Shown here piece by piece: positions 2,158 through 61,005 of a stretch of 64,000 nt of DNA; position 1 is the first letter of the stretch; every line of letters starts with the position of its first letter. Made by a program: the position numbers and the translations under genes. Source of the stretch: Geosiphon pyriformis uo1 (lineage: Eukaryota > Fungi > Glomeromycota); the NCBI GenBank assembly GCA_016748015.1, contig JAAOMT010000135.1:802018-866017 (forward strand), given 5' to 3'. The notes below the pieces were generated by a model, which saw only the letters and a list, made by a program, of their open reading frames with translations, had not been told where the DNA came from and did not search any database.

Positions 2158-2380
2158 TTTATTTGTGTTCTATTCTACGAGAAATAGCTAATTTGGGAAT
2201 AGCATTTAAGGCAGAGCAGTATATATAGGACTTGACTAACCTTCTTTCGTTCGTGTATTATGTCTTCCAGTAGGCTTGGAAATCGTTACTTGAACGTTTA
2301 ACTTCGATCTATCACGAAAACAATAACGATAAAAAGTTATTCTCAACAAAACCGAACTTCAAGCAATGATGATGGATGAG

Positions 2381-4028
2381 TCGCCAGGATGAGAGCTGAT
2401 GCTCTTGGGACAGGATAAGAGCTGGCCAAGAGTCCCTTTAGTTAAACATCAATTAAAAAAAAGTCCTTCCTCAGCCTTTAGCAGGTATTCTCATAAGAAA
2501 AATGTTCATTTTAGAAATGGATTTATTAAATATAGGAAATTTCGGTTCAATAACTATTGGGGAGTTTGAGTTTTTTTTATTTCTGTAACGACTTTATCAA
2601 ATGATAAATTCTCCGATAGTTCAGTACACGACTTTTGCATTTGTATACTCTAATTGGCCTTAGGATTTCTTCAACAAATTATGAGTGTGCCAACCCCATT
2701 TTGGTGATTTTGACAGTATATTTTGACAGCCACTTGTTGAGAGAACCGTTCTTTAATATAACATTATTTTAAAGGGAACTTCAGTTGCGAAAGTCCTGAA
2801 AGAGCATTTGAACTTCTTGGACCGTATGTGTACTTGACAGTCAAGCTATTTTTAGATGGTTTTACATAGCCAAAACAGCCATCGGGATTGGTACAAATAG
2901 GACCCTTGTAATAACTTAGGTAAAGTAGTGGCCACATGCGTGATTGGATGACACGAAAAAATCTCTTCATACACGCGTTTGTTTTCGTACTTCCAAATCC
3001 CTATATAAAAGCTATCATATAAATCACAAGACGCAATTTTTTAAAACACATTTACATTTTTTGTTTTTTGCCTGACATTGCAACGCTAATACCTCGTCTT
3101 ACATACGCATCCTTCTATCACCAGCTTTCAATGTCTTGCTTGGAACTAACAACTTACATGGTCAAGAGGCTCAAATGCCCTCGTAATTACTTATNNNNNN
3201 NNNNNNNNNNNNNNTCGCCAGGATGAGAGCTGATGCTCTTGGGACAGGATAAGAGCTGGCCAAGAGTCCCTTTAGTTAAACATCAATTAAAAAAAAGTCC
3301 TTCCTCAGCCTTTAGCAGGTATTCTCATAAGAAAAATGTTCATTTTAGAAATGGATTTATTAAATATAGGAAATTTCGGTTCAATAACTATTGGGGAGTT
3401 TGAGTTTTTTTTATTTCTGTAACGACTTTATCAAATGATAAATTCTCCGATAGTTCAGTACACGACTTTTGCATTTGTATACTCTAATTGGCCTTAGGAT
3501 TTCTTCAACAAATTATGAGTGTGCCAACCCCATTTTGGTGATTTTGACAGTATATTTTGACAGCCACTTGTTGAGAGAACCGTTCTTTAATATAACATTA
3601 TTTTAAAGGGAACTTCAGTTGCGAAAGTCCTGAAAGAGCATTTGAACTTCTTGGACCGTATGTGTACTTGACAGTCAAGCTATTTTTAGATGGTTTTACA
3701 TAGCCAAAACAGCCATCGGGATTGGTACAAATAGGACCCTTGTAATAACTTAGGTAAAGTAGTGGCCACATGCGTGATTGGATGACACGAAAAAATCTCT
3801 TCATACACGCGTTTGTTTTCGTACTTCCAAATCCCTATATAAAAGCTATCATATAAATCACAAGACGCAATTTTTTAAAACACATTTACATTTTTTGTTT
3901 TTTGCCTGACATTGCAACGCTAATACCTCGTCTTACATACGCATCCTTCTATCACCAGCTTTCAATGTCTTGCTTGGAACTAACAACTTACATGGTCAAG
4001 AGGCTCAAATGCCCTCGTAATTACTTAT
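2381..4028. other. 20-N assembly gap (3195-3214) flanked by an exact 814-bp overlap duplication
   Basis: 2381-3194 is identical to 3215-4028. The inverted paralogous copy near 38.3-39.1 kb has this sequence only once. Confidence 0.9.
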
Positions 4029-6070
4029 TATTATTTATCTATTTTTTGTATTTTCTTCATTCGTTAACAAACATAATACAGAATACTGGAAGCGACCCAT
4101 CTCCAGATGGGGGAGTATTTCAAAATGGGATATGATTTATAGCCAAAAGAATTCGATGAAGGGTTCTCATGATGCCTTGTCAAGCGATATCAGGCGCTTG
4201 ATTAAGTGGTTCCCAGATCACAAATCAGCTGTCCTGAAACTGAAGGCATTTGAAAAAAAATTGGTTAGTGTTTTTTCCTCTTGCTAAAATGACATCGCGT
4301 GATGTAGTTCCTTGCTCACAAAGTAATATTTGCACGCATTCTCGCTGAAATACTCAATTGTGAAATTTCAGCCGAAAACTAATATTGAGGAAGAAACGTC
4401 AAAGCGCAAAATTACAGGTAAGGAGTTGGATTGGGAGGTATTCTTTTTCAACTCTCAATCAATCTTTCATCTTTAAGTTGAGAAAAAGAGCGCAAAGAAG
4501 CCTCGCATTGAGGCAACAGAAGCTGATGAAAGCAGCTTAGACGAGCAGGAAGAGAGTCAGGCGTCAGGGAGTGATGATTTGCTCAATCGGCCGTATGAAA
4601 AGGTCCTTGAGCAGATTAAAGCCGTTCAAATGGACGACACAGCAGCCTTCATTAAGTAAGGTCTTTCCTATTAAAATTTAACTTTCCTTTGATTTATTGG
4701 TAAAATATTTGATTTTTTGAATTCCCTTGTACAGCCCTTTGTACTGGGGGGTTATTGATCTTCGCCAGGCCAAGATTTCCCCAAGTCCATTTCTTCTCCG
4801 AGGAAAGGAGCTTTTACCCCAGCAAGAATATGAACGGCTTTGTAGCCTTATGGGCAACATAGTCGAAGAGGAAAGTCATTTAAACGATTCATCGGCCGGA
4901 TTTTTGGAGGCCATTGAAATTTCGGGGAATAAAAGTATTGGGGATCTTGGTATGCGGTTTCGGGCCAATGGTACTGCGGGCATTGGAAATCTAATTCGAG
5001 AAGGAAATCAAAAGGCAAAAGCCTTATTACGGAATTTCAATGAATTTGATGAGGACACCCAGTACATTGCAGAATGTTTTTCAGCCATGTAAGTTTTTTT
5101 TATTGGTTTATTTTTTAAATTAACAATTTAAATATTAATTTGGATATAAAAGTGCTAGATGGCTAAAAGATTTCAATGGTGACACACATTCTGAGAGGAA
5201 CGTGGATGGGTTTGCTCTTTTGCAATTAGCTAAAGTTCCCGGTGCAAGATTCGATTAGTATGTTGATTTCTTTTTTTATTTTTTATTTTTGTATGAATAT
5301 AACAATTATGCTTTGACATGTAGTGGTGAAAACCATTCTCAGGCGGATAAAGAAGAAAAGGAATCTCGCTCTAATTTGGCTAGGATTGGAAAACCCTGTG
5401 ATTACCTTTTTCGTGTATATAGTTTTTTTTATTCTTATACTTTTTTTATTAATGGATTTTTAGTCCTAATTTTTTTATTAATGCGTTTTTAGTCTGGCCA
5501 TCAAGAAATTGGATGTGGTGAAAATTCAGGTCCAAAATGCAAAGATTCCATGGATAAAGCAAATACAGACTTTATCGATGTTGTGAAAGTTGCCCGTTCA
5601 CAACATATCGCTTTTCTGACAGAGTGTACTGAAACCAGTGGTCTCGATCCTCTTTCAACCATTGTGCAAGATGCATGCGAGCTGATTGTGATTCCTTTTT
5701 TTCAGCTAATAGGATATCGTATTCGGTTTTATATTTTGCTGCAAGTGAGTGGAGAATTATATGCAATCTGGCAGTGGGGATCAGAGTTATTGCCGACTCA
5801 TGATGACCATGTGAAGAAATTATTGTCAGTGTGCAAATTGTTTTTTCTTTATAGGGTGAGTACCAAAAAACTTTTGTTTATTTTTAATAATAATCAAGGT
5901 CTTACTCTGGAATTTTATGTTCTTTGTAGAATCTTTTGGCTAGAGTACAAAGGTTGGGAACAGCTGCCATTGATAAAGCGAAAGGAAGGCTTCAGTGGAA
6001 TTCTGTGGTTTTGGAAAGGAAGGCAAAAATTCAAATAAGCGGGTTGATAGAAAAAGAAAGATGTGAATGA
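3965..6070 (+). CDS. Multi-exon protein with a C-terminal PD-(D/E)XK restriction-endonuclease-like fold (Crinkler/CR-REase-like family)
   Basis: Nine GT-AG exons join in frame from ATG 3965 (MSCLELTTYMVKRLKCPQYWKRP...) through NPLYWGVIDL, SERNVD, GENHSQADK, IGKPCDYLFR and QEIGCGENSGP to TGA 6068-6070. The D...ExxxxE spacing resembles fungal REase domains; the family call is from motif memory. Confidence 0.6.
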
Positions 6071-8726
6071 ATATTAATTTGTAATACTAGAGTAGGCTCT
6101 TTTGTTTCCGCAAAAAGTAATCATGTAAAAAAAAAAGAAGACAATGCGAGGGAGCAAAAGGAAAGGTCTAAAATACATAGAAAAAGTAAATGGATATAAA
6201 AGCCTAAAGATAAAAGTATGAAAAAGACTTGTGCAATTTTTTCACTTGAAGGATACGCTGTCTCAAAAATTAAAAATGATGGAAAACCTAAAAACTTAGA
6301 TATTCTATGTAAAACGAGGAAAAAAGTGCAAAACTTTTCGCGAAAATAATATGTTGATCCAAAACTTTGTTGCCATTGTGTGGCACCAAACAGAAAGTCT
6401 ACCATCAATTCGTAAGAAAGAACCCTTGCCTGGATCCGTGAATCTCAATGGATTATCCAAACATTCATTAAAACTTGTAAGGTTTATGATTCATTTTCAA
6501 AAGAGGGATACTCCGCAGATTTCTGATCTATTTGGTCTTTATTTCCACAAATAATATTTTGTATAAATTTTTACCAAAGTTTACTCTCACACATGATCCC
6601 CTTTACTTTGTTGCTAAACTGCAGCACCGTTTGGAATGCTCCTTTTCTTTGGATTAACAATAGTCAATACATGGAGGTTTTCTTCCCTCTCAGGAAATAA
6701 ATACTCGGACGTTATCGAAAGTTTATATTTTCAATCAAATTGCTAATATTTGATGCATTGTCATTTTTGATCAAAAATATTTAGCTGTTTTTCGCAATGA
6801 GGAGCAAAATTTTTTTTGTCATTGTAATTATGTGCCGGATTTCACGTGATGTTAGATTTAATCTTTTTTTTTGGTTATTTTGAATCTATTTTCCCTTATC
6901 ATGTTTCTATGGATTTTATCGATAGTAAATTTTTAAAAAAAGCAGAGGGATTTAAAATTGATGTTTTGATTTCATTATAATGCGAAAAATGAGTTTAATT
7001 AAAAGAAAAACAAGAAAGAAAAAAAAACAAACAATGAAACAAAAAAGAATTCTGGGACTTATCATTTCCAGTTATGCGCCTCGATAACATGCAAGATGAA
7101 TATGGAAAATTTTAATAAGATGAAATGGCCTAAAAAAATTCGGAATCTAATTAGCATTCACATACCGATTCGCTCATTGTTGACAGTTTAAAAATCCCAA
7201 AAATAATTTTTTCTAATTTGAATTCCCAATTTTGAAAGAATTTCTCTCAAATGTTTGTAATACATGAATTGTGCTTTAAATAGTATTCATGCTAAACTTT
7301 TTTGGATCCTGGGAATCTTGGCGATTTTTTTCAGTGCTACAAACTTTTCTTTCACTATTTTTTTTTTTTTTAAAAAGTTCCCATTTATGAATTTATCATT
7401 ATCACTATTATTTTTATTTTTATTTTTATCAACAATGAATCATGATATGAAAAAATTCCTATTGCATTCTATTTTCTGATAAGTCTTAATTATCATCGAC
7501 AATTATAATTCGAAAAATGGAATTCTGCCAAAAATTATTCATGGGTGCAATCATTTACGGGTATTTACCCATTAAAAACTACCATTACCAATGGTGCAGC
7601 GGGGAAATAAATTATTAACGATTAAATGCAACAAAGGAAATTAAAAAGAATAGTTTCTTATTCATATTTGAAGATCTTTAGTCCACCCTTCCATATAAAG
7701 ATTCATAATAATTAAAAAGGAAATCATTAGCACTTTTCTTTTATAATTAAAAGAAACGAGAAAAAGGTTGTTCCTGTTGCTCCTCTTCCTTTAACATAGT
7801 TCAAAGATGATATTCTTTATCGCATTAGTAGAAAAATATACCTTTTTAAGAATTTTTTTAATTTTTAATACATGAAAAAAACGCTACCTTTTAACTTGTA
7901 AAAAGCCAGAAATTCGATTTGAAAATTTATCGGCGATAGTACATTTGTTATTCGCTCATTATTACCGAGATTTTTCATCATCCTTCTCTGGTATCATTAC
8001 TTTTGAAATGGTTGATAAAAATTAGGAGACAAAACTTCATTGCACCAATCCTGCACCCATAAGTTTTGAACAGGTAGAAATTTCAAGCGATTTGTTCATG
8101 TCTACAGTATAATGCATGTGTCCATACAAACGGCGAATACCACGATTATCATGCAGTTAAAAGTGCAAGTGGATGGACACGTTGTAACCGGATTTCAAAA
8201 TCATTACCAAAAAGAGCCTTCAAAAACCGGACATTGTAGTAAGAATGACGTTCTATCATGAAATTTTGACGTTTCTTACCAAGAAGGATGATGATGAAAA
8301 TGATGATTATGAGTTTATTTTTATCGTTTAGCTTCTTTTTATTGTGTGTACCCGGTGATGCGGCGGCGTATGTTAATCATAATTTCAAAAAAATTTGTGA
8401 TATAATAAAAGGTATATATTATGCTTCTCACCAGAATTGATTTATACATCAATTAATGGTTTATTGTATTAAAATCTAGCTTCTAAAATTGGATAATAAC
8501 ATGTAATTTATTGCCCGAGGTTTGTGTTCCAAAACTTTTACTGGCCAAGTCATTCTATTTAGGTATGTAATTTTATATTCATATGTTCCTGTAGGTCAAC
8601 TGTTCTGTTCCTCTCTATCTTCATTAATTCCTCTCCTTTTTTTTGTTCCCCTCTACCCTTTAAAAATACCACTCTTTAAACCCGACCCGTTGTCGTTCCT
8701 TGGGCTGGTCTTTAAAGAACTCCATT

Positions 8727-34255: not shown

Positions 34256-34650
34256 AATATTGTTAAGAAAAAAAAATTATTGGTATTTTAAGTTTTAAGT
34301 TAGAATAATTATAATATTGTACAAATCTATTATTTTGACTTAAAAATAAACAAAAATAATCTTGTTGTTGTAAATAATTGTTGTTGTTGCAAACAACATA
34401 AAAAAAATTTGGTAAAAAATTAGAATTTTTTTAATAATTAGGATAAATTAATAATAATATTATTAATTTATGTTGAAAAAATAAATATAATAATAATTAT
34501 TGTCAATATTGTTGTTGTTGTTACTGTTGCTGCTGCTGCTGCTGTTTAATTTGATAATGATTGTATTGTATGTTATTATTATTACTATTGTTATTAGAGT
34601 CTGAATTACCAAAATTGTTTTGTTAATTGTAATTTTGGATTATTTTTAAT
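34256..34650 (-). pseudogene. Hypermutated copy of the FKS1 5' end (about 125 codons)
   Basis: For example, the reverse complement of 34299-34328 (agatttgtacaatattataattattctaac) matches FKS1 10261-10290 (ggatctgcacaatatcataatcaccctagc). The CAG/CAA polyQ tract is still visible at about 34510-34545; the ATG is mutated to ATA. Confidence 0.9.
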
Positions 34651-34965
34651 TTTTAAAATTTTTAAGCTGTTAACAATAAACAAATTAGTTGGTAAATACT
34701 AATTAAATTCCGAATTTTTTTAGGCTATTTTATTTTATTAAAACTTTTTATATTTATTTGTATGTTATTAAAATAGATAATTAAAGTAATAAGTTTAAAA
34801 ATTTTTTTTTAATTGATTGATTTTTTTTTCTTGTTTTTCTTTTAATTAAAATTTTTTTTCATATTATAATGAAATCAAAACATTAATTTTAAATTTTTTT
34901 GTTTTTTTAAAAATTTATTATCAATAAAATCTATAAAAAAATAAAAAAAAATAAATTCAAAATAA

Positions 34966-35720
34966 AAAAATATATATATATATTACATCATTATTAATTA
35001 TTATAGAACTATTTCTTTTTTCTCTTAATGAAATATGTAATCAAACATTTCATAATAGTGTTATTTTACATTATAATAATATGCTATTTATAATACATAA
35101 TTATAAATACATGTATTATAAATATATAATATAATATAATTAAACTTGTATAATAAATATGATCAAACTTATGATCAAAATTATTATAAAATATATTAGT
35201 CTAAATATTTTCACTTACTATATTGTTTTATTTATATAAAAATAATTACAAATTTGTATTTAATCTAATATGTTTTTTATCTTCTAATCTAGTATATTTT
35301 TTATTCATATTTTTTATTTTCTAATCTATTATATCTTTAATATTGTATTTTTGATTTTATTTATTATTAAACTCTTTTAATATGCAAGCTTTTCTAACCA
35401 TACTATAATACAACAAGTTTTATATTTATAAAACTTTTACAAATTAACACCAAAAATTTTATAATATATTTAAATATAATTATATAATAAATACAAAAAA
35501 ATTTATTATATTAAAAGTTTAATTTATATATTATAAATTAAATTGTATTTTTATATTCTAATTAACTAATAAATCATGTACTATTTAAAATTATAAGATT
35601 TTTATATTTTTATATTCTAATTAACTAATAAAAATTCAAAATTATATGCTATATAAAATTATATAAAACATAAAATTTTGAATTTTTTCTTTTATAATAG
35701 CATAATATATGTTTATTTTC
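34966..35720. mobile_element. Degenerate non-autonomous insertion, possibly PIF/Harbinger (Tourist-like)
   Basis: Interrupts the duplicate at donor position about 6875-6877. TAA on both sides (34963-34965, 35721-35723), with weak roughly 20-bp AT-eroded terminal inverted similarity. Confidence 0.4.
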
Positions 35721-36488
35721 TAACCAAAAAAAAATTAAATTTAATATCATGTAAAATTCAATTTATAATTACAATAACAAAAAATATTTTGTTTTTTATT
35801 GTAAAAAATAATTAAATGTTTTAATTAAAAATAATAATACATTAAATATTAGTATTTTAATTATATTTAAGTATTTATTTTCCGAGAAAAAAAAACTTTT
35901 ATATATTAACTATTGTTAATTTAAAGAAAAAACCAATCTAAATAGTACTGTAATTTAATAACAAAATAAAAAAATTAAATATAAATATAAACTTTGATAA
36001 AAATTTATATAAAATATTATTTGTAAAAATAAAAATCAAATAGATCAAAAATTTGCAAAGTATTTCTCTTTTGAAAATGAATTATAAATCTTATAAGTTT
36101 TAATAAATATTCAAATAATCCATTAAGATTTATGGATTTACAAAAGTTTTTTCTTATAAATTAATAGTAAACTTTTTGTTTAATATCATACAATAACAAC
36201 AAAACTTTGAATTAACATATTATTTTCATGAAAAATTTCACACTTTTTTTTATTTTACATAAAATATCTAAGTTTTTAGGTTTTTTATTATTTTTAATTT
36301 TTGAAACAGCATATTTTTTAAGTATAAAAATTACATAAAAGTTTTTTTATATTTTTATCTTTAGACTTTTATATTTATTTATTTATTTTATGTATTTTAG
36401 ACTTTTTTTTTGTCTTTTTTGTATTTTTTTTTACATGATCATTTTTTGCAAAAACAAAAAAGCTTATTTTAGTATTATAAATTAATAT

Positions 36489-38358
36489 TTATTCATATTT
36501 TTTTTCAATTTTTCTGGTATTTTTTTTTCTATTAACTCACTTATTTAAATTTTTGGTTTTTTTTTTAAAAATTACAGAATTCTATTGATGTTTTTATTTT
36601 ATTTTATTAATAATAACTGTCTTTAATTTTTGTGTTTTAGCCAAAAAATTTTACAAAAAACATAAAATTCTAAAATAAAAGTTTGATTATTATTAAAAAT
36701 AAACAAAAGTTTTTTGGTATTTATCTTATAAAAAAAAACAATTTACATACTGACAATAATTTTTTATATGGTTATTATAAGTTGGCAATAATTTTAATTT
36801 TTATTATCATATTGTATATAATTTTTTACTTATTTATAACAAAATATAAAACCAAATATAATATCTTATTAACTAAAAAAAAGGAATTGCAATTAGCTTA
36901 TATGCATTTTATACAATGATTAATAGAGAATTGAGACTACTGGTTTTAATATACTGTAACAAAAAACCAAAAGATTATAAACAGGCAATTTTTACAACAT
37001 TAATAAAGTCTGTTTTTGCTTTATTTATAAAATTTTTGTATTTTAGATCTGAATTTTTATTACATTTAATTTTTTGATGACCAAACTAAAAATGCATTAA
37101 TAAAAAAATTAAGACTAAAAATGCATTAATAAAAAATTATAAGAATAAAAAAAATTATATACATAAAAAAAGTAATCACAAAATTTTTCTTTATCTGCTT
37201 AAAAATAGTTTTTACTATTACATGTCAAAGCATAATTGTTATATTTATACAAAAATAAAAAAACCAACAAATTTTGTACTGAAAACTTTAACTAATTGCA
37301 AAGAACAAACTTATCTACGTTTTTTTCAGAATTTGTGTTACTATTAAAATTCTGTAATAAAACTTTTGTCTTTTGATTTTCTTCTTGAATTAGATTTTTA
37401 ATGTTTGCAGTACTATTGGCTCAACATTGTATACCAAGATTCTTAATACTTTTATTTCCTAAAATTTCAATGGCCTCCAAAAATCCGGCCAATAAATCAT
37501 TTAAATAACTTTTTTTTTTAACTATATTGCTCATAAGACTACAAAGCCATTCATATTTTTGTTGGAATAAAAGCTCCTTTCTTTGAAAAAGATCAATAAC
37601 CTTTCAATACAAAGAACTGTATAAAAGAATTCAAAAAATTAAATATTTTACCAATAAATCAAAGGAAAGTTAAATAGGAAAGACCTTACTTAATGAAGGC
37701 TGCTGTGTCGTCCATTTGAACGGCTTTAATCTGCTCAAGGACCTTTTCATACGGCCGATTGAGCAAATCATCACTCCCTGACGCCTGATTCTCTTCCTGC
37801 TCGTCTAAGCTGCTTTTATCAGCTTCTGTTGCCTCAATCCGAGGCTTCTTTGCGCTCTTTTTTTCAATTTAAAGATGAAAGATTGATTGAGAGTTGAAAA
37901 AGAATACCTCCCAATCCAACTCCTTACCTGTAATTTTGCGCTTTGACGTTCCTTCCTCAATTTTATTTTTCGGCTGAAATTTCACAATTGAGTATTTCAG
38001 CGAGAAGGCGTGCAAATATTACTTTGTGAGCAAGGAACTACATCACGCGATGTCATTTTAGCAAGAGGAAAAAACACTAACCAATTTTTTTTCAAATGCC
38101 TTCAGTTTCAGGACCATTTAATCAAGTGCCTGATATCGCTTGACAAGGCATTATGAGAACCCTTCATCGAATTCGTTTGGCTATAAATCATATCCCATTT
38201 TGAAATACTCCCCCATCTGGAGATGGGTCGCTTCCAGTATTCTGTATTATGTTTGTTAACGAATGAAGAAAATACAAAAAATAGATAAATAATAATAAGT
38301 AATTACGAGGGCATTTGAGCCTCTTGACCATGTAAGTTGTTAGTTCCAAGCAAGACAT
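36489..38358 (-). pseudogene. Pseudogene copy of the REase-fold gene at 3965-6070
   Basis: The 5' part (38358-37640) is nearly identical to the donor apart from a few SNPs and short deletions. The 3' part is saturated with C>T/G>A changes. Confidence 0.9.
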
Positions 38359-39949
38359 TGAAAGCTGGTGATAGAAGGATGCGTATGTAAGACGAGGTAT
38401 TAGCGTTGCAATGTCAGGCAAAAAACAAAAAATGTAAATGTGTTTTAAAAAATTGCGTCTTGTGATTTATATGATAGCTTTTATATAGGGATTTGGAAGT
38501 ACGAAAACAAACGCGTGTATGAAGAGATTTTTTCGTGTCATCCAATCACGCATGTGGCCACTACTTTACCTAAGTTATTACAAGGGTCCTATTTGTACCA
38601 ATCCCGATGGCTGTTTTGGCTATGTAAAACCATCTAAAAATAGCTTGACTGTCAAGTACACATACGGTCCAAGAAGTTCAAATGCTCTTTCAGGACTTTC
38701 GCAACTGAAGTTCCCTTTAAAATAATGTTATATTAAAGAACGGTTCTCTCAACAAGTGGCTGTCAAAATATACTGTCAAAATCACCAAAATGGGGTTGGC
38801 ACACTCATAATTTGTTGAAGAAATCCTAAGGCCAATTAGAGTATACAAATGCAAAAGTCGTGTACTGAACTATCGGAGAATTTATCATTTGATAAAGTCG
38901 TTACAGAAATAAAAAAAACTCAAACTCCCCAATAGTTATTGAACCGAAATTTCCTATATTTAATAAATCCATTTCTAAAATGAACATTTTTCTTATGAGA
39001 ATACCTGCTAAAGGCTGAGGAAGGACTTTTTTTTAATTGATGTTTAACTAAAGGGACTCTTGGCCAGCTCTTATCCTGTCCCAAGAGCATCAGCTCTCAT
39101 CCTGGCGATTCATCCATCATCATTGCTTGAAGTTCGGTTTTGTTGAGAATAACTTTTTATCGTTATTGTTTTCGTGATAGATCGAAGTTAAACGTTCAAG
39201 TAACGATTTCCAAGCCTACTGGGAAGACATAATACACGAACGAAAGAAGGTTAGTCAAGTCCTATGGTACAAACCATTTATAGTCATCAAACAATTTATA
39301 TAATTTTAAATTGTATCTAGTCTTCCAATTTTAATAATATTAAAAAACTAAACCGTAAATATGATAGATTAAGTTCTTCTCTTTCACATTTACGGTTTAC
39401 TTTTTTGAATTATATTATATTTTATAAAGTTATTAAAGTTTAAAATTAGCCACTTTTATTATTAATCTTTAATTTTCGGATGCCGATCAATCAGATTTTA
39501 GCCAATCAGCAATCATTAAAGTCACGTTACCACGTGATAAATCATCATAGTATTATCATTTTCAGAAAGACTTTCAATTAATATTAATCTAAAGATATAG
39601 TATCTTTTGGTTTGTGTGTTTTTTGCTGGTGATATGGCACCATTAACCATAAATATTCTATTTACACCATTATCATATTTAGTTGTCATTATTGGGACAG
39701 AAATTCAGATATCAATATTGTTTATATTAAGTGTTAAAAGAATTGTAAAAGTATTATGAATAATTATTAGAGAATTAGGAATGTTATTTGCACTCTATTT
39801 GTAACCTTGTATTCCTCTTGATAAACATTGAGAACAACTGGCTTTGGTGCTAAAAGCAGCAGATTTAAGGCAAGAATTGGAATAACTGTGACATAATTGG
39901 CTGTCAGCCCAAAAATAATACTATAAGCAAAATATTTGGTATTAAGAGA

Positions 39950-42370
39950 CATTGTAAAAGATTAATCACTTGTCTCAACTCTTATACCTTGAAACAAGAA
40001 TGTGACTCAAAATTTATGAAAAAAATTAATGCAATTAATTTTTTAATAAATAGACTTTGCAGTAAATTATAGATGGGTTACTTTTTTTTAAAGCATCATA
40101 TATACAACATATGTTTTTTAATGACTGATGTTTTAAACACTTCTTTTTCATAAAATTTTAGAAATAGATTGTGTTCTATTGTTATTCATAGAAGATAGGA
40201 ATCATAGTAGTATATATTAGCCAATCAAAAGTAGACATAGTAAAATAAAAAATTCTAGAATTCTTCTTAGAAAAATTACAGAATTCTAGGAATTACAGGA
40301 TTCTTATATGAGGAATTCCAGAATTCTTGACAGAAAAAATAAAAGAATTGAGGAATCTCAAATATATATATAACAGTAATATTAGAAACAGAAAAAACAG
40401 ATTTTTCAGTTTAGATTTCATTTAAGCAATCTTCTAATTTACAAATATCAATAAATAATTATTTGTTATATCAATTCATTCTTTACTATCAACATAAAAT
40501 GTTGATAGTAACTGATACTTAACCATACTAGAACAATAGCTCTTGATTATAGCTATTGACAGGATATTAACATTCATTGTCTTGGCTTATTTCTTTATTT
40601 TTTTTTATTTTTTATTTTTTTTTGTTATTTCTTGTTGTTGACTAATTGATTAAAAATTAAAGCACTGAGTTATTAACATCAAGAATTGTTTGGTAAAAGA
40701 CTCTTGCAAGTGAGTAAAACACATAAAAAATATGAATTGCTTATCAAAGAATTGCTGACCACCAAACCAAGAAAAAAATTAATGGAATTGCAATTCCAGA
40801 AGACTACTGAAAACAATTATTAAATCTCTGTTCATTATACAAAGAACTCAACCTAAATCTTCAGACAACCTAAACTTTCAGACAACTTAAATCTTTAAAT
40901 AACCAAAACCTTCAGATACTAACATTATTATATCAGCTATTGAGCACCAAATTATGAGTTTATTATTTGTTTTAAGACTTTAAATAATCATCTATAATAC
41001 TGTTTGATAAGAGAAATAATTAAAAGCTTAAAAATGTAAAGCATAAAAGTAGTATTTATGATTAAAAATTAACTTAATCAGGTCTAAAAAAAAAGAACCC
41101 ATAAATTGTTTTTGCAATCTATAAAAGATAAAAAACATTAAGCAACTTTGAAAATTTTAACCAGTATCATTTTTATTATAATGTGAATACTTACTTTGAA
41201 TTCACAAATAACTTTTCAATAACTATAATATTGTATTTTAAAGAATTACTTGAATTTAAAAGATATACAAAATCCTCTGTAATAAAGGTTTCTAATTAAA
41301 TTTAATATTTGAATAATTAATTATACCAAAGAGAAATATAATAACTAAAATACCTATTATGTATTTGACCAAATTATAATCTAGTTTTAGAATTGGTTTT
41401 CTAGGCTGTAAAAGAAATTTCAATTGTTGAATATTTTAACAACTTATTAGAATATGATATATAATAGCTTATTATAGTAATCAAAAAACTTATATCAGTT
41501 GGTATTAATTTAGGGAAATCAGATTGGAATTGAAAGATTTTTGGCTTTATCTTGATTAAAAGAACTGAAGTTGTCTTAAAGTCTATAATCTTGAATAGTT
41601 CTTTTTTGTTAGTATTGTATATTTTCTAACAAGTTCATTTTAATGCAAAAAATGTATAAAATATAATAGTTCAAGTAGATAAAACCCAGATTTTTTTGTA
41701 AAGGTCTAATAAACTTTTCACTTATAAGAATTTAGCATCTTTGAAAATATGTAAATTATTATTAAAATACATGACATTTTCGAAATCAATTGCAAGTCCT
41801 AATTGAATTCATAAATAAATAATATTCTTTTCAAATTTTTTACTAATGTAATATAGAAAACATATATCAAATATTAAGTAACTAATAGAAAAGAAGTGTA
41901 TAATACCAATCTTAATAATATTTAAGAATCTTGGCTTTTTGATTATATCATAATATTCTGGATATTCTTCTTTGAATGGTAAATCTATAAATAATTTGGC
42001 ATATTATCGATCACTAAATATGAAAATGAGAGATTATAATTAGGCTATAATACTAAAATTGAAATTTATCTCAAATATTCTTATCTACTATCTTTTTGAT
42101 CAATAATCATTTGCAATAAATCTTTTATTAGCTTTAAGAGATCGGCTTCAATTTGAAAATCAGGTTTTTTTGAATTGGTTGTTTAATTGTCAATGTTAGA
42201 TTTTTTTGCCCAAATTTCTTGTTATAAGTCAAAAAATTTTTTGTAGTAACTATTTTTATTGATGTTACCTGAATTTTCAGCTCAAATAATCTCCCCAATC
42301 CCAATAAAAAATTTTTTTTGATGAATGCTAAAAGAGCTTTTTTTGATTGCTTCTTATTCAGAACTACAAA
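39950..42370 (-). pseudogene. Degenerate intron-containing Bromodomain + BAH gene (Rsc1/Rsc2/polybromo-like) inside the transposon
   Basis: Bromodomain: LLKLIKDLLQMIIDQKDSS|DR*YAKLFIDLPFKEEYPEYYDIIKKPRFLNII (YPEYYDIIKKP at 41964-41932) and EFN*DLQLI(F)ENVMYFNNNLHIFKDAKFL (about 41810-41722). BAH: KLDYNLVKYII|EDFVYLLNSSNSLKYNIIVIEKLF, QFMGSFFFRPD, (T)EHNLFLKFYEKEVFKT (40179-40128). Stops and homopolymer frameshifts are present; ends approximate. Confidence 0.8.
40180..40999 (+). mobile_element. Degenerate solo LTR of the Gypsy family seen at 56.9-64 kb
   Basis: Starts TGTTATTCATAGAA and ends TATAATA (eroded TGTAACA); collinear with LTRs 56901-57738 and 60107-61005. 4-bp TSD CTAT/CTGT; it splits the BAH exon. 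Confidence 0.85.
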
Positions 42371-42547
42371 ACAAAAATTAAAGTTTAAATTAGAACCAAA
42401 GAGATTTAAAGAATAGATATATATCTGAATTAAAAACATTATTTTTATTATAATACAATTTTATTGTACAACATTACACAGTTTAAATTCTTTAATTCTG
42501 TCCAAGCACCAATTACACACTAGATTAATATTAAATTACATAAAAAA

Positions 42548-44649
42548 ATGCCACTTTATTCTAAAGGAAAAAAAAAGCTAAAGATCAAGTTAGAAATACA
42601 AAAGAATCATATAAAAAAACACATCATACCACTTTAATAAATGATCATGATATTGAAGTAAATAAATTTAACAGACTGGATGTTAGTAATAGAGAGTAAA
42701 ACAACAATAATAATAGTAAATGAGATGATACAGAAGATATAGAAGCTGTAATTAAAATAAAAAAACTCAGTTTAGTATAGAAAAATAACAATTATCTAAA
42801 AAAAAAAGTAAGGCCCTTACATGACAAAAAAAACACCAAAGTTAACCTATTATGATAAATATGAACAAATAATTTGTTCACCATAGCAGCAGCCAGAACT
42901 AAAAAAATTATCATTTTCTTTAATATTAGTGATGCTCAAATTACAGATTTACAATAGTCTGAATCTAATTAATCTTTAAGCAATTCAGAAAGTGAGGTTA
43001 ATCCATATGCTAATTAAATAAAAAAAGAGCAAAAGTTAAAAGAACATTTAGAAAAACAATATGTTCAGTTAACTGTTTTCGAATATAATCAAAAAAGAAC
43101 TATTTTTGAATATCTTACCTTGTTAAATAATAATAATGGACATGAAAAAATTAATGCCAGTTTGAAAATTGTCCAAAAAGTTTTTATTGATGGTAGTATA
43201 TAGAAAGCATAAAAAATTTGATATTTTGCAAAGTATTGGTTGCTTAATAATAAGTTTCTAACATTAAAACATAGAAAACACCAAAAAACAATTAGAATAA
43301 TTAATGATAAAGACATTGCAGAAAGATGTTATATTTGGATTAGAAACCAAAACTTTAATGTCATTCCAGCCATATTTAAAAAATTCATTGAGCATGAATT
43401 GTTTTCTAATATTAAAATAATAATAAAAAAAACTATTAGTCTTATGACTGTAGTAAGATGGCTCAAAATTCTTGGTTATTTATTCTAACAACATCATCAA
43501 GGCTTATATTATAATGAACATAAAAAAAATAATGTCTTACAATCTTGAAAAAAATTTTTAGAAAAAATATTTGAGCATGAAAAATATATAAAAGTGAATT
43601 TATGGATTAAATACATCCTAACTTACTTAATAAAGAGAAAAAAAGAGTTTTTGTAGTTCATAATGAATGTATTTTTTATTCAAATAAAAACAAACATGGC
43701 ATATGAACTGAACATGAAAATTTGCCACTAAGAAAAAAAGGAAATGGAAGATCAATTATGGTTAGTAAATTTTTAACTGAAATTGATGGATGTTTATATT
43801 TACAACAAAATAATATAAAAAACTATTTTAATATACCAGAAAAGGCACAATGCTATTTGCAACCTGATATAAATCAAGATAATTATTGGACAGCAAACCA
43901 TTTTTTTAAACAAATTAAATATAAAGCAATTCCAATTTTTGAGAAATTATATTCAGATTGTACAGCTGTATTTGCTTTTAATAATAGCTCTAAGCATACA
44001 GTATTTAGTAAAGATGTTTTAATTGCAAACAAGATAAATTTAAGTCCAGGTAAAAAGCAATCATTAATGTAAGATACTTCTTTTGAATTAAATAATTAAT
44101 TACAATTGATGATCTTTCTGAAACATATTCAGATAAAAAACTTTGAGAATTGCTTAAAAGAATTAAACAAGTATTAATAAAATGAAAAAAATGGCCATCA
44201 AAAGAATTAGTATTAGAATACCAAAAATGCAAAAAAAAAATCAAAGATTCTTCAAAAATTTCTTGTTGTGCACATTGAGTAATATCTTTGAAATTCGATT
44301 TTCTTGCTCAAAAAAATACAATTGAAGAATTAATCAAAAATATGAGACATGAGTGCATTTTTTTTCCAAAATTTTATTGTGAATTAAATTTTATTAAAAG
44401 ATATTAGAAAGCTGCTAAAAGATATGCACATAACAAATGTGATTATTCATGAAAAAAATTATAAAGAACAGTATCTAAAAGTCTTGAATCAGTATCTTTA
44501 ATAACTATTAAACAATTTTCAAGAAAATATTGGTGTTATATAAATCTTTATAGAAAAGATTTTAGTGGAAAATTAGTAAATCTTATAGAAAAATTCCAGA
44601 TAATATTCTTAAAGAATTAGACAAATTAAATAATATTCAAACTTTGTAA
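42548..44649 (+). pseudogene. Degenerate DDE transposase of the element 39265-44833
   Basis: LVVHNECIF (HDE), PLRKKGNGRSIMVS, AIPIFE...AVFAFNNSSKH (FDNS), FFPKFYCELNFIK (PKFHCELNFIE) and terminal SYRKIP. All three presumed catalytic residues are one G>A change away from D/D/E. Confidence 0.85.
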
Positions 44650-44919
44650 TACTGTATTTGGTTTTATATTATATAAAATTTACTAAAATTTTATTTTTTA
44701 TTATAAATAATATATTAAAAACACATATATTATAACCAATAAAATTTAATTATATAAATAAAAACATGTAAAGATTATCATTTAAAATTTCGGACTGATC
44801 TATATTTTTGATGATTATAAATGGTTTGCATCATATATATACTGCTCTGCCTTAAATGTTATTTCTAAATTAGCTATTTTTTATAAAAAGTCTAAAATAG
44901 ATGTGATTATAAGAAAAAA

Positions 44920-46215: not shown

Positions 46216-46363
46216 TACAGTGAACTCTCTAAAAAAATCTTTCTCTTGTCAATTCTCTAACTACAACAAGAGCAAAAGATAATTTTGAAGAAATCGTTTT
46301 TCTTTTTCCCTTTCCCCTCAATCCCTATTAATTATTTCTTCTAACTTACCTTTATTTGTTGTG

Positions 46364-48228
46364 ATGGAACTGGTGGGCTCATCTGCTGGTGGTTCTGGTT
46401 CGGATTCAGCTGGTTTAGGGACCCGCCAGAGTGCTAAAAACAAGCGTGTTGATACAGTTTATGCCCATAGTGCATCCTACAAGAAGCCTAAAAAGCCTGC
46501 AGCTAGTGTTTCAGTCAAGTCATCCACTGGTCCTTTATATTTAAAAGATTTGGGTGGTAATGATAGTAAGCCAGCGGCATCCTGGGGAAGCAGAGTGGAT
46601 AGTGTTTCTGGTAATGTAAGTGGTCATTTGGATGTCAAGAATTTGGAGAACTTAGTTGCTGAGAAGACAAGCTATGTTGATTCAGGTGAGAATGACGAAA
46701 TGAACAAGACTATGCTGCATAGGACTCGCATTCGGACATATGTGTTGAAACAATCTCTTAAGGCACCTCTATTTGCTACTATGAACAACAATGACAACAA
46801 TTCCGTGTTGCCACCTCCTAAAATCAATAGGTCTAATCAGCTGCCCTCTTCTAAATCATGTGTTTTTAAGAGTTGGAGTTTTGGGCCAGTGAAATTGTTT
46901 GCTCTGGATGTGAATTTGTTAGCTATTCCTAGCAGGACTAATAGTGATAAGTTTATTTCAATCAAAAATTTTTTTTACAAAATTGATGGTTTTGGAGGAG
47001 CTTCAACTCCTTCAAAATTTCCTGGTGTTATCCGTTCAACTTTCACAAGTGAGTCTAGTTTGATCAAGGCCAGAGAAATGGCAGTTCATGAGAAAATTGT
47101 TGTCAATGGTAATCTCAAAAAAGCAAACATTCATTCGAATCGGGAAGTGATCATTAAGGAGATCCCAGTTGATTTTCCAAAGTTGGCTGTGGAATCAGTT
47201 TTTTCTAAATTTGGCAGGATTGTTTTCATCAGAATGCAGTTGATTGGTCTTTAACAAAAAGTCCTGATTGAATTTGAGTCATCAAAAGTTGCCAGTTTGG
47301 TTGCATCTAAATGGTCGGTTCTTGTGGGAAAGAATTTGGTGTGTGTGGTATTGGTGGTTAGTAATAAACAAACATGGTATCAAGAGATCAGCATCAGGCA
47401 TTGCTTTATACTCTTCTAGTTGGCACCACTGCTCATGATTTTTCTGGTCTGTTGGATTTGTATAGTGGGAAGACCTGTGTTATTGGCCATAATCCAGTTA
47501 CGTATGTTTGAGATAGGTGTGCTGTTATTTGTTTTGCTGATGAAGCTTCCAAGTTGACTGTTTTTGGTTCGGTTCTGGGCTGGTCTTTTTCTGGCTTGCT
47601 GCACTGTATGCAATCTGTGTGGTCATACTAGTGGAGTGTGTTTAGTAAGTGAGAATTCTGGTAGCCATGAGAAAAAAGTGGTGACCAATCTGGATCGTGT
47701 TTGTTTGGCCAGTATTTATAAGAAGAAGCAGGCACCTGTTACTCGTCCAGTCTCTTTTGGTGAGAGAACTTGGGCATTGGTGGTTGGTGCTCCTTCAGTG
47801 TGTAGTTCTCATAGTGATGGTTTAATTCTTGGTTCCAACAAAGTTGGTAAACCTCTCCCTTCTGTTGTGAATGATTTGAAAAAGCATTTGGTAAATATTG
47901 AAAGCAGTCTCGTCAGTCTCGTGGGACAAATTGGTAAGTTGGCTAAGAGGTTGGATTCACTCGTGCCAGCAGTTTCCCAGCCTAGCCCTGGATGTCAGCT
48001 GCTAGTAACACCCCATTGCAGAATCAAGGAGAGGATATAGTGATGGGAGTGGGTTTGGGTGATGCCACTGGTAACAAGACTGCTGCCGTTGTGGGTTCAA
48101 CTGCCTCACCTGAGGTTGTGAAATTGGAGACCATGTTGGAGGGTCTTGCTGCTTCAGTTATGAGCTTATTAACATGCTTGGATGGTTTGGCTTTGACAGG
48201 TGATGTTCCTCTTCTACCTCTTTCTTAA
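46364..48228 (+). pseudogene. LINE ORF1 (RRM-like region, zinc knuckle, coiled coil)
   Basis: VIIKEIPVDFP...VFSKFG (RRM-like), CTVCNLCGHTSGVC knuckle and heptad-rich C-terminus, with internal stops and frameshifts. Confidence 0.75.
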
Positions 48229-56900: not shown

Positions 56901-57738
56901 TGTTACAAATGATTCTTTGGGGTCTCGAATCAAATAACAAACCCATAACTTGGTGCTCAAAAGCTATTTCCATTGATGATGTTTTGAAAGTGTTGTATTT
57001 GAAGGTTTTGATGGAGTTCTTTGTATAATGGACAGAGGTTCAATAGTTGTTTTATCCGTAGCTTCCCAAACTTGCAAGTCTGTTAATTTTTTTTTCAGCT
57101 TGGTGACTGGCAATCCTCTGGTAAGTAATCTGTATCTTCTGTACATGTCCTACCCTCTTGCAGAGGTTTTTTACTAGGCAATCCTTGATGTCAGTAATCA
57201 GTGCTTTCAATCAATTGGTTAGTGCACAATAACAAAATCACAGAAAATAAAGAAATCTAAAGAAATAAGCCAAGGCGAGTTTCAGATTAGTATCTTATTA
57301 ATAGCCATGATCAAGAGCTATTGTTCCAGTGTGGTTAAGTATCAATTACTATTAACATGAAGTGTTAATAGTGGAAAATGGATTGAGATATGAAATAATT
57401 ATTTATTTGATAATTGTGTTTCTAGCTAAGGATTCTGTAGTATTAATTCTGTCTTTTTTGTTTCTAATACTACTGCTATATATACATATTTGAGATTCCT
57501 TAATTCCTCAATTCCTTGCAACAAGAATCCTGGAATTCCTGGAATCCTGCGATTCCTGATGAGAGGAATCCTGGAATTCTGGAATCTTGTAATTCCTCAT
57601 CAGGGAATTCTAAAATTCCTGGAATCCTGCAATTCTTCTGAGAAGAATTCTGGAATTCCACATTTACTACGTCTATCTCTGATTGGCTAATATCTACTGA
57701 CTAATAATACTATATTTTTCTATATTCTATGAGTAACA
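56901..57738 (-). repeat. 3' LTR (838 bp)
   Basis: Minus-strand TGTTACTCATAG...TGTAACA termini, homologous to the two solo LTRs. Confidence 0.92.
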
Positions 57739-60106: not shown

Positions 60107-61005
60107 TGTTACTCATAGAAATATAGGAAATATATTAACATAATTATTAACCAATCAGAAGTAAGCGTAGTAAATGTGGAATTCCAGGATTCCTCTTAGG
60201 AATTGCAGAATTCCAAGAATTTCAGGATTCCCAACAAGGAATTGCAGGATTTCAGAATTCCAGGATTCCTCTCAAAAGAATCACAGGATTCCAGGAATTC
60301 CAGAATTCCTGTCATGAAGAATCGAGGAATTGAGGAATCCCAATTATGTATATATAGCAGTAGTATTAGAAACAGAAAAGACAGAATTGATACCACAGAA
60401 TCCTTAGCCAAGAAACCAATCATCAAATAAATAATTATTCCATATCTCAATTCACTATTCACTATCAACACTTCATGTTGATAGTAATTGCTACTTAACC
60501 ACACTGGAACAATAGCTCTTAATCATGGCTATTGACAAGATACTAACGGACCAAATTGCCTTGGCTTATTTTCTTTATTTGCTTTATTTTTATTTTTTAT
60601 TTTTTTTATTTTATTTCCTTTCTTTCTTTGATTTTGTTGTTGTATACTAATTAATAAAAAGATTAAGCACTGAGTTATTGACGTCAAGAATAGTCTGGTA
60701 AAAGACCCAGAAATAAGGGTAGGATTTTATATATATTATCGGATAGCTTACCAGAAGGGCACAACTGCCAGACTAAATCTGGCCACCACGCTGAGAAAGA
60801 AATTGGGAAAACCACTTGAGGATACAACCACTATCAATCTTATTGAATCTCTGTCCATTGTACAAAAAACTCCACAACAAAATCTTCAGATCAACCAAAA
60901 CCTTCAGATACTATACCTTCCACACATCATTCACAAAAGTAGCTTTTGAGCACCAAGTTACGAGTTTATTATTCAATTCCACAACAGAAATAATCACCTG
61001 TAACA
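60107..61005 (+). mobile_element. Solo LTR (899 bp) inserted antisense into the Gypsy RNase H
   Basis: TGTTA...TAACA termini and TSD GTGT (60103-60106 / 61006-61009). Excision restores the frame EQEHLAIYWAV. Confidence 0.93.

Follow-up and report, generated by a model that had tools for sequence, protein, structure and literature searches.

Chromatin-related modules are carried within several kinds of mobile element, among them chromovirus chromodomains, VANDAL VANC and KDZ/Zisupton-linked domains, and in these cases the modules are kept intact across elements. The element described here, from the genome of the mycorrhizal fungus Geosiphon pyriformis, likewise holds a chromatin-related module, but neither maintenance nor targeting was seen for the Geosiphon cargo. 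As a TIR element with captured gene DNA it resembles the Pack-TYPE elements (Pack-MULE, Pack-Mariner; PMC8903248), and its TIR-bounded derivatives of 0.75-1.25 kb fit, judged by size, non-autonomous carriers of gene pieces. It differs from them in that the full 4.8-kb element retains a transposase, in that the host is a fungus, and in that the cargo is ~70% identical to host exons, as opposed to 93-98% in the plant examples (PMC8903248).

Two further systems invite comparison. Sailor (DD82E) elements have a D-to-E spacing of 78-111 and mostly a TATA duplication, the spacing in Tc1 being 34 (PMC8533490). The Geosiphon element shares with IS630/Tc1/mariner (ITm) transposons, the group to which Sailor belongs, short TIRs, a TA duplication, a DDE triad in DDE_3-like motifs and a single transposase ORF close in size to the longest Sailor enzymes; however, with a spacing of 138, a TA rather than TATA duplication and a 2.1-kb insert it falls outside Sailor. 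The ciliate Tec/TBE elements (PMC7325037) have extra opposite-strand ORFs inside ITm TIRs, as found here, but those ORFs are intact and conserved, whereas the Geosiphon cargo was frameshifted in the founder and is absent from relatives.

Anatomy of the element and its family

The window (the whole 64,000-nucleotide stretch of contig JAAOMT010000135.1 that was analysed) contains at 39265-44833 one C>T-hypermutated copy of an element that is present ~80 times in the genome. Judged by its anatomy, namely 27-bp TIRs, a TA duplication and a DDE_3-type transposase, the element is IS630/Tc1/mariner (ITm)-like and predicted to be an autonomous cut-and-paste transposon (Table 1). The TIRs match at 24 of 27 positions in the window copy and at 26 of 27 in the family consensus, and the TIR has 161 matches genome-wide, the reversed control having none. 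The TA duplication is demonstrated by an unoccupied paralogous site at window ~2225, and TA borders every readable end of the other family copies. These observations bear out the TIRs, the target-site duplication and the plus-strand transposase of the preliminary description.

The catalytic codons lie at 43662 (D), 43980 (D, Asn in the window copy) and 44396 (E), corresponding in the consensus to D381, D487 and E626 with 138 residues from the second D to the E. The DDE_3 profile matches a sister copy with E=4e-4, a value below the Pfam cut-off, and the transposase falls with DDE_3 clusters at 0.94-0.98 in the Atlas; a PDB search with it gave no match. A Rhizophagus relative has a transposase with 74% amino-acid identity (dS 1.8, 1.3-2.3). 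Elements free of cargo are found in Rhizophagus (L051, 3.3 kb) and on a contig from soil (L062), and all relatives with a readable left end are of this kind, and no cargo was found beside the transposases of L051, L062-L070 and L072-L074, most of these contigs being too short to tell. The nearest transposase relatives (L071, L073, L074) are partial sequences.

The family forms one young group with 0.3-1.1% non-transition divergence, and no clear older subfamily is present among the matches listed. The copies are heavily C>T hypermutated; one, 98% identical to the consensus, was left out of consensus building and provides an independent check on it. The least mutated copy lies on contig C54. 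The full-length element measures 4.8 kb, of which the cargo insert makes up ~2.1 kb. The LTR recognised in the preliminary description is a solo LTR that is missing from sister copies and was thus inserted later, at this site only; LTR relatives lie in the window at 56985-57557 and 60278-60908.

Table 1. Coordinates of the features in the window
Feature	Position	Strand	Remarks
Flank	38295-39265		inverted duplicate (99.8%) of window 2225-3194; region upstream of RPC31-like gene
Left TA target-site duplication	39263-39264		right copy 44834-44835; empty site one TA shorter
Left terminal inverted repeat	39265-39291	+	27 bp
Last cargo exon, RSC4 Ig-like	39591-40005	-	140 codons; 92/140 identical to host exon
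BAH exon (TEHN...EVFKT)	40082-41003	-	29 nt shorter than host exon; in-frame stop
Solo LTR	40180-40999		4-bp duplication 40176-40179 / 41000-41003; splits BAH exon
BAH exon (LQKRFAGS-FFRPDQ)	41074-41117	-	
First BAH exon (GDFVYL...ERLFVNS)	41197-41276	-	BAH E=0.006 on raw window piece
Linker exons	41355-41405 and 41494-41625	-	8/17 and 14/38 identical to host exons, respectively; intron positions same
Bromodomain helix B/C exon	41722-41839	-	1-bp deletions at ~41820 and ~41785, plus 3-bp deletion
Bromodomain ZA-loop exon	41911-42013	-	Bromodomain E=8e-4
Cargo 5' part: linker exon with bromodomain helix Z at its end	42085-42363	-	preceded by intron and short stretch 42423-42450
DDE transposase	42548-44649	+	716 aa, intact in family consensus
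Right terminal inverted repeat	44807-44833	-	27 bp

A broken, partial chromatin-reader gene on the opposite strand

The cargo corresponds to the 3' half of a polybromo/RSC4-like gene of Mucoromycota with the architecture Bromo-ANK-Bromo-BAH-RSC4_Ig-like, of which the host homologue is G9A89_020961. It shares with this gene the second bromodomain, the start of the BAH domain, the Ig-like tail and the intron positions, but is frameshifted and lacks bromodomain 1, the ankyrins, half of the BAH domain and the low-complexity exon. The profile matches confirm a spliced, degenerate Bromo+BAH gene on the minus strand, and all seven internal introns retain GT-AG; the gene extends, however, into the Ig-like exon that had been missed. 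At the 5' end the short stretch 42423-42450 resembles the end of the parent's last ankyrin exon and may be a remnant of it, as suggested by 27 nt that match where the homologous splice donor lies. A possible cargo ATG at 42448 lies ~100 bp from the transposase ATG, the two genes being head-to-head.

The bromodomain had been described as full. Its conserved Asn codon is present at 41761-41763, a position compared with polybromo, but it lies downstream of a premature stop and the domain is full only if two shared 1-bp deletions are bridged. The ZA-loop exon is identical to the host at 24 of 34 residues and to Ambispora at 26 of 34, and in copy L021 it matches Bromodomain with E=7.5e-6, over the cut-off. 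The BAH exons are likewise present, but they amount to the first half of the domain only: the next host exon, holding the rest of BAH and ~290 low-complexity codons, is missing from the cargo. The T-run of exon 41074-41117 varies in length, the in-frame length being the commonest (7/15), and exon 40082-41003 is of equal length in 9/9 aligned copies. The Ig-like exon is open in the consensus, while in the window copy it is interrupted by stops and a 25-bp deletion has removed the stop codon; PF22994 matches the annotated C54 copy with E=0.0015 and the host protein with 6e-5.

The cargo is family-wide: of the 57 copies marked by their transposase, at least 51 have it within 20 kb, which confirms that it belongs to the family and rejects a one-off insertion. 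Both 1-bp deletions in the helix B/C exon are present in 26/26 aligned copies, and at a marker for the second deletion all 56 genome matches have the broken form and none the intact form. Copy-specific decay can be dismissed as the source of the frameshifts given that the lesions are common to all copies, as can splicing around them, because a reading of the consensus shows no acceptor that would bring back both helix B and Asn. Hence the founder combined an intact transposase with a cargo bearing at least three frame-breaking lesions, contrary to the intact consensus cargo ORF envisaged earlier. Its frame ends 17 codons into the helix-B exon, short of Asn, and no single frame holds a four-helix bromodomain with the conserved Asn. 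Because the founder cargo was frame-broken, the second gene was unable to read acetyl-lysine in this expansion, and the proposal that it reads acetylated chromatin is ruled out to that extent. The cargo was very probably dead throughout the burst. A 538-bp cargo deletion occurs in 10 of 29 fetched loci and, given that deleted copies and the short derivatives have spread, the cargo is dispensable in cis for transposition. No active element with an intact accessory ORF was found.

Origin of the cargo

The preliminary description compared the cargo with the Rsc1/Rsc2/polybromo subunits of RSC/PBAF. The RSC1/2-type gene adjoins the left edge of the window and is hence a tempting parent. Orthology to RSC1/2 was judged by whether the closest host gene is of RSC1/2 type with a C-terminal WF..PPLD tail. 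The cargo exons are 65-84% identical to G9A89_020961 as against 39-58% to the RSC1/2-type gene (73% vs 39% for the first BAH exon), and the cargo ends in the RSC4 Ig-like exon, so that RSC1/2 is rejected as parent in favor of a Bromo-ANK-Bromo-BAH-Ig gene. G9A89_020961 is the best genome match for every exon tested, with the same exon order and intron positions. The near-identity to a host gene that would point to a one-off capture was nevertheless not found: the cargo shares 74% of amino acids with G9A89_020961 at dS ~1.9 (1.5-2.7), the introns are unalignable and the host has changed ancestral residues that the cargo retains. Host and Ambispora orthologue are separated by dS 2.0, the cargo being equally distant from the host, and saturation is approached at a dS near 2. 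The cargo branch has an omega of 0.069 (2dlnL 26.5 against omega 1) and a neutral tail of at most ~0.07, indicating host-like purifying selection over at least 90% of the branch with frameshifts only afterwards. Trees place the cargo outside Geosiphon+Ambispora at 81-82%, while a cargo+Geosiphon clade is not rejected by the tree test (p-AU 0.22). GC3 of the cargo (0.35) and its intron GC (0.29) are as in the host gene, but composition does not discriminate because Ambispora shares the GC3. Searches for a donor genome and for a cargo-bearing relative in other species found neither, and in a search with the Ig exon across 1.84 billion representatives the transposon-type matches with a name were all from Geosiphon. 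Glomerales and Diversisporales orthologues were not retrieved by a search that reached some lengths only, from which their absence does not follow.

Combining these data, we suggest, at what we regard as about an even chance, that a related but unsampled fungus was the source of the captured cargo, which then came in horizontally. The ancestral element had the layout TIR, ~300 bp, transposase and TIR, with the transposase probably binding the 27-bp TIRs, as anatomy and family knowledge suggest, and duplicating TA; in this family ~2.1 kb of gene DNA, introns included, lies reversed in front of the transposase, ~100 bp from its start. During the purifying period the cargo would have been an ordinary gene of an unsampled Archaeosporales-like fungus, where the transposon may have taken it up before a putative horizontal entry to the Geosiphon lineage. 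The frameshifts followed the purifying period, and only after them did one founder expand to ~80 elements, which C>T hypermutation killed. The dS of 1.8 between the transposase and that of Rhizophagus hints weakly at transfer, and among horizontal transfers in fungi those of Tc1/mariner elements are the commonest (bioRxiv 10.1101/2025.06.16.659975). If the donor was indeed foreign, a small cut-and-paste transposon has moved a nuclear gene, introns included, from one fungal lineage to another, and the cargo is a surviving sample from a lineage not yet sequenced.

If the present host gene had been captured recently, in the manner of Pack-type elements, the exon order, the intron positions and the best genome match of each tested exon would be accounted for. 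Such a capture is nonetheless extremely improbable: with a dS as large as that to Ambispora's orthologue the cargo is no recent copy and the homologous gene not its direct source, and C>T damage does not explain the divergence because the independent copy confirms the consensus. Alternatively, a Geosiphon paralogue duplicated soon after the Geosiphon/Ambispora split could have remained functional, been captured recently and since been lost or left unassembled, consistent with the unrejected clade, the host-like composition and an assembly in 792 contigs. We consider such a paralogue unlikely, since protein and DNA searches of the Geosiphon genome found no second copy, long retention followed by loss around the time of capture is required, and the GC3 is that of Ambispora also.

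It is also unlikely that the cargo was once a functional accessory gene, captured long ago, kept as a compact bromodomain-BAH-Ig protein selected for chromatin tethering or anti-silencing, and broken only in the copy that founded the last burst. The long purifying branch, the GT-AG introns, the arrangement head-to-head with the transposase and its nearby ATG, and the compact form, in which the N-terminal half is gone and the long low-complexity exon was lost in frame, speak for this history. Yet the loss halves the BAH domain and is expected to be in frame one time in three, the 5' end resembles a cut ankyrin exon, and the host-like omega is sufficiently explained by a host gene without a new function; in addition, the marker is intact in none of the 56 matches and the relatives provide no cargo-bearing element. 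On this unlikely reading an ITm lineage would have kept a captured bromodomain-BAH-Ig gene as a working chromatin reader over approximately the span since the Geosiphon/Ambispora split, and intact elements with both genes would persist in early-diverging mycorrhizal fungi that are as yet unsampled; an ITm element would then encode an acetyl-lysine reader of its own, a case of which we found none in the literature searched. Very unlikely, finally, is an altered function in which a short product (Ig alone, or half-BAH+Ig as in KAG9305422.1) or cargo RNA acts on host RSC or silencing. In several copies the matched stretch of the Ig exon has no stop, short derivatives retain the Ig end of the cargo, and one copy is 98% identical to the consensus; but the commonest deletion takes half of this exon, which has no evident start or promoter of its own and adjoins the left TIR, so that end-retaining deletions keep it anyway. 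We return to capture in a related fungus as the preferred reading, under which the cargo now does nothing for transposition and is a dead passenger.

Insertion sites and gene models

The window copy lies in the TATATATA run of the flank, ~70 bp before the ATG of the RPC31-like gene of the intact duplicate, which we take from a motif to be a candidate RPC31. The promoter targeting proposed on this basis finds no sign in the readable copy flanks, where all readable ends lie at a plain TA. Of 22 right flanks, 6 start with TATA; a flank reaches at least 30% GC in 7 copies, the remaining flanks being AT-rich. These plain TA ends and mostly AT-rich flanks give promoter targeting no support.

The element clearly exemplifies the capture of a gene by an apparently autonomous ITm-like transposon in an early-diverging mycorrhizal fungus. 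It is also a source of false gene models, as KAG9305422.1, KAG9301117.1 and KAG9302055.1 look like pieces of the element.

A transposon family from a single founder

The element that carries the cargo, a minus-strand Bromodomain-BAH-Ig gene piece, is bounded by terminal inverted repeats (TIRs) of 27 bp and lies inside an inverted duplicate that is 99.8% identical to window 2225-3194. The unoccupied duplicate has one TA fewer, which proves the TA duplication given in the preliminary description.

The consensus transposase is an open frame of 716 codons with D381, D487 and E626, the C-terminal part of which matches DDE_3 (E=4e-4). The element differs from Sailor in its D-to-E spacing (138 residues here) and TA duplication (PMC8533490), and we file it as IS630/Tc1/mariner-like without a named family. 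Relatives free of cargo, i.e. a full 3.3-kb Rhizophagus element and a soil contig, run from left end to transposase in approximately 300 bp.

Of four degenerate patterns of 31-32 letters searched genome-wide, the transposase pattern gave 57 markers and the TIR pattern 161 matches, equivalent to about 80 elements; the 33 copies scored have identities of 84-88%. Copies differ from the consensus by 5-17% in C>T and G>A changes and by just 0.3-1.1% in all others, and this low non-transition divergence indicates a young burst from a single founder. The reconstruction of this founder is validated by an independent copy on contig C54, which was left out of consensus building and is 98% identical to the consensus over 2 kb. 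This copy, at a contig end, is nearly free of hypermutation. In the family copies C>T hypermutation is strand-symmetric, affecting 57% of CG sites and 27-38% of CA, CC and CT sites, and is RIP-like yet not CpA-specific. Insertions are at TA in mostly AT-rich flanks, a reading limited by the missing annotation and by hypermutation that spreads into the flanks. The LTR family of the solo LTR in the element is also inserted in at least eight other transposon copies at differing positions.

Features of the window and of Geosiphon contigs (C-numbers)
Feature	Location	Size	Remarks
Element under study	window 39265-44833		TIR-bounded
Solo LTR	window 40180-40999	820 bp	later insertion
Same LTR family	window 56985-57557, 60278-60908
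Large inverted duplication	window 2225-7204, 34649-39265		identity 99.8%, 93%, ~74% with distance; second copy increasingly hypermutated
Exact repeat	window 2381-3194, 3215-4028		short N run between; possibly assembly artefact
ORF without Pfam match	window 46361-47254	297 codons	starts GC-richer stretch; possibly retroelement ORF
Host gene G9A89_020961	C728 295500-300700		Bromodomain, ankyrins, bromodomain, BAH, RSC4 Ig-like
Host RSC1/2-type gene	C663 799000-801800		bromodomain, BAH, WF..PPLD tail; ends just left of window base 1
Short TIR-bounded derivatives	C446, C568, C623, C651, C657, C658, C667	~1.25 kb
Short TIR-bounded derivatives	C354, C544	0.85 kb
Short TIR-bounded derivative	C664	0.75 kb

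Parentage and state of the cargo

The cargo is a spliced gene with GT-AG at all seven internal introns, and in exon-by-exon profile searches single exons match Bromodomain and BAH, as had been proposed. Its final exon, overlooked before, is RSC4 Ig-like (140 codons). Judged by exon sequence, the parent type is the host gene G9A89_020961 and not the RSC1/2-type gene: each exon tested is closest to G9A89_020961 (65-84%, versus 39-58% to the RSC1/2-type gene), the intron positions of which equal those of the cargo. The neighbouring RSC1/2-type gene is rejected as parent on these lower identities, and its closeness to the window looks like chance. Ankyrins within a polybromo/RSC4-like protein were not expected; the bromo-ankyrin-bromo-Ig core also occurs, in some cases without one domain, in Ambispora, Paraglomus, Actinomortierella and Calcarisporiella.

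The cargo comprises the 3' half of a parent-type gene, reversed, approximately 100 bp ahead of the transposase start. The bromodomain was described as full with its acetyl-lysine-binding Asn kept; in fact two 1-bp deletions in the helix-B exon are shared by 26 of 26 aligned copies, and the founder frame terminates 17 codons into this exon, ahead of the Asn. For the second deletion, the genome-wide pattern search found 56 broken forms and no intact one. In the last BAH exon 29 nt are missing and a stop is present, the exon for the remainder of BAH is absent, and there may be two further, weaker lesions at the cargo 5' end. Of the 29 loci fetched, 10 share a deletion of 538 bp that runs across BAH and Ig. 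The cargo was very probably already dead when the family expanded. Of the proposed two-gene family with a reader of acetylated chromatin, the feature is real and the cargo family-wide, but in this family the cargo does not work as a chromatin reader; compared with transposons that carry accessory chromatin genes, it lacks an intact ORF.

Ig-exon matches without a nearby transposase or bromodomain marker number 26, several of them within TIR pairs 0.85-1.25 kb apart, and most short derivatives are of this kind.

Where the cargo worked

The odd feature of the cargo is its deep origin. Over 273 domain codons the cargo protein is 74% identical to Geosiphon and 73% to Ambispora; dS is 1.9 between cargo and Geosiphon host gene and 2.0 between the two hosts, and no cargo intron is alignable. 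The cargo was therefore not copied recently from the host gene, and the near-identity proposed as the mark of a one-off Pack-TE capture is absent. The element resembles Pack-type capture (PMC8903248) in the mode of gene capture and differs in being autonomous and in that its cargo is distant from every host locus.

A codon model with three branches gives the cargo branch a dS of approximately 1.5 and an omega of 0.069, well under 1 (2dlnL 26.5); single-domain estimates of omega are noisy, all at most 0.15. Under a two-phase model the neutral tail can be no longer than about 0.07, and a purifying dS of at least about 0.9 is required. These likelihoods pool codon columns across separate exons, and the longer tree used one database protein (P0021). 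The cargo falls outside Geosiphon plus Ambispora at 81-82%, with alternatives unrejected (p-AU 0.22-0.25). The long purifying branch and short neutral tail imply that the cargo was long a working gene somewhere and decayed only briefly.

By our own judgement, there is about an even chance that the gene worked in a related fungus, from which it would have been captured by a transposon and then transferred horizontally. A foreign donor is consistent with the single young family, the missing paralogue and the host-like omega, and horizontal transfer agrees with the known mobility of Tc1/mariner elements in fungi (bioRxiv 10.1101/2025.06.16.659975). Alternatively, the cargo worked inside the transposon itself, with which its compact, head-to-head layout agrees; however, no intact or foreign cargo-bearing element was found among 1.84 billion representatives, nor an intact or foreign cargo beside related transposases, most of them on short contigs, and we regard this as rather unlikely. 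That the cargo served as a Geosiphon paralogue, since lost, we likewise consider improbable. For the origin in a related fungus, the transposase gives a weak hint of transfer: its dS to Rhizophagus, 1.8, does not exceed the one that separates the host gene from that of Ambispora, a nearer relative.
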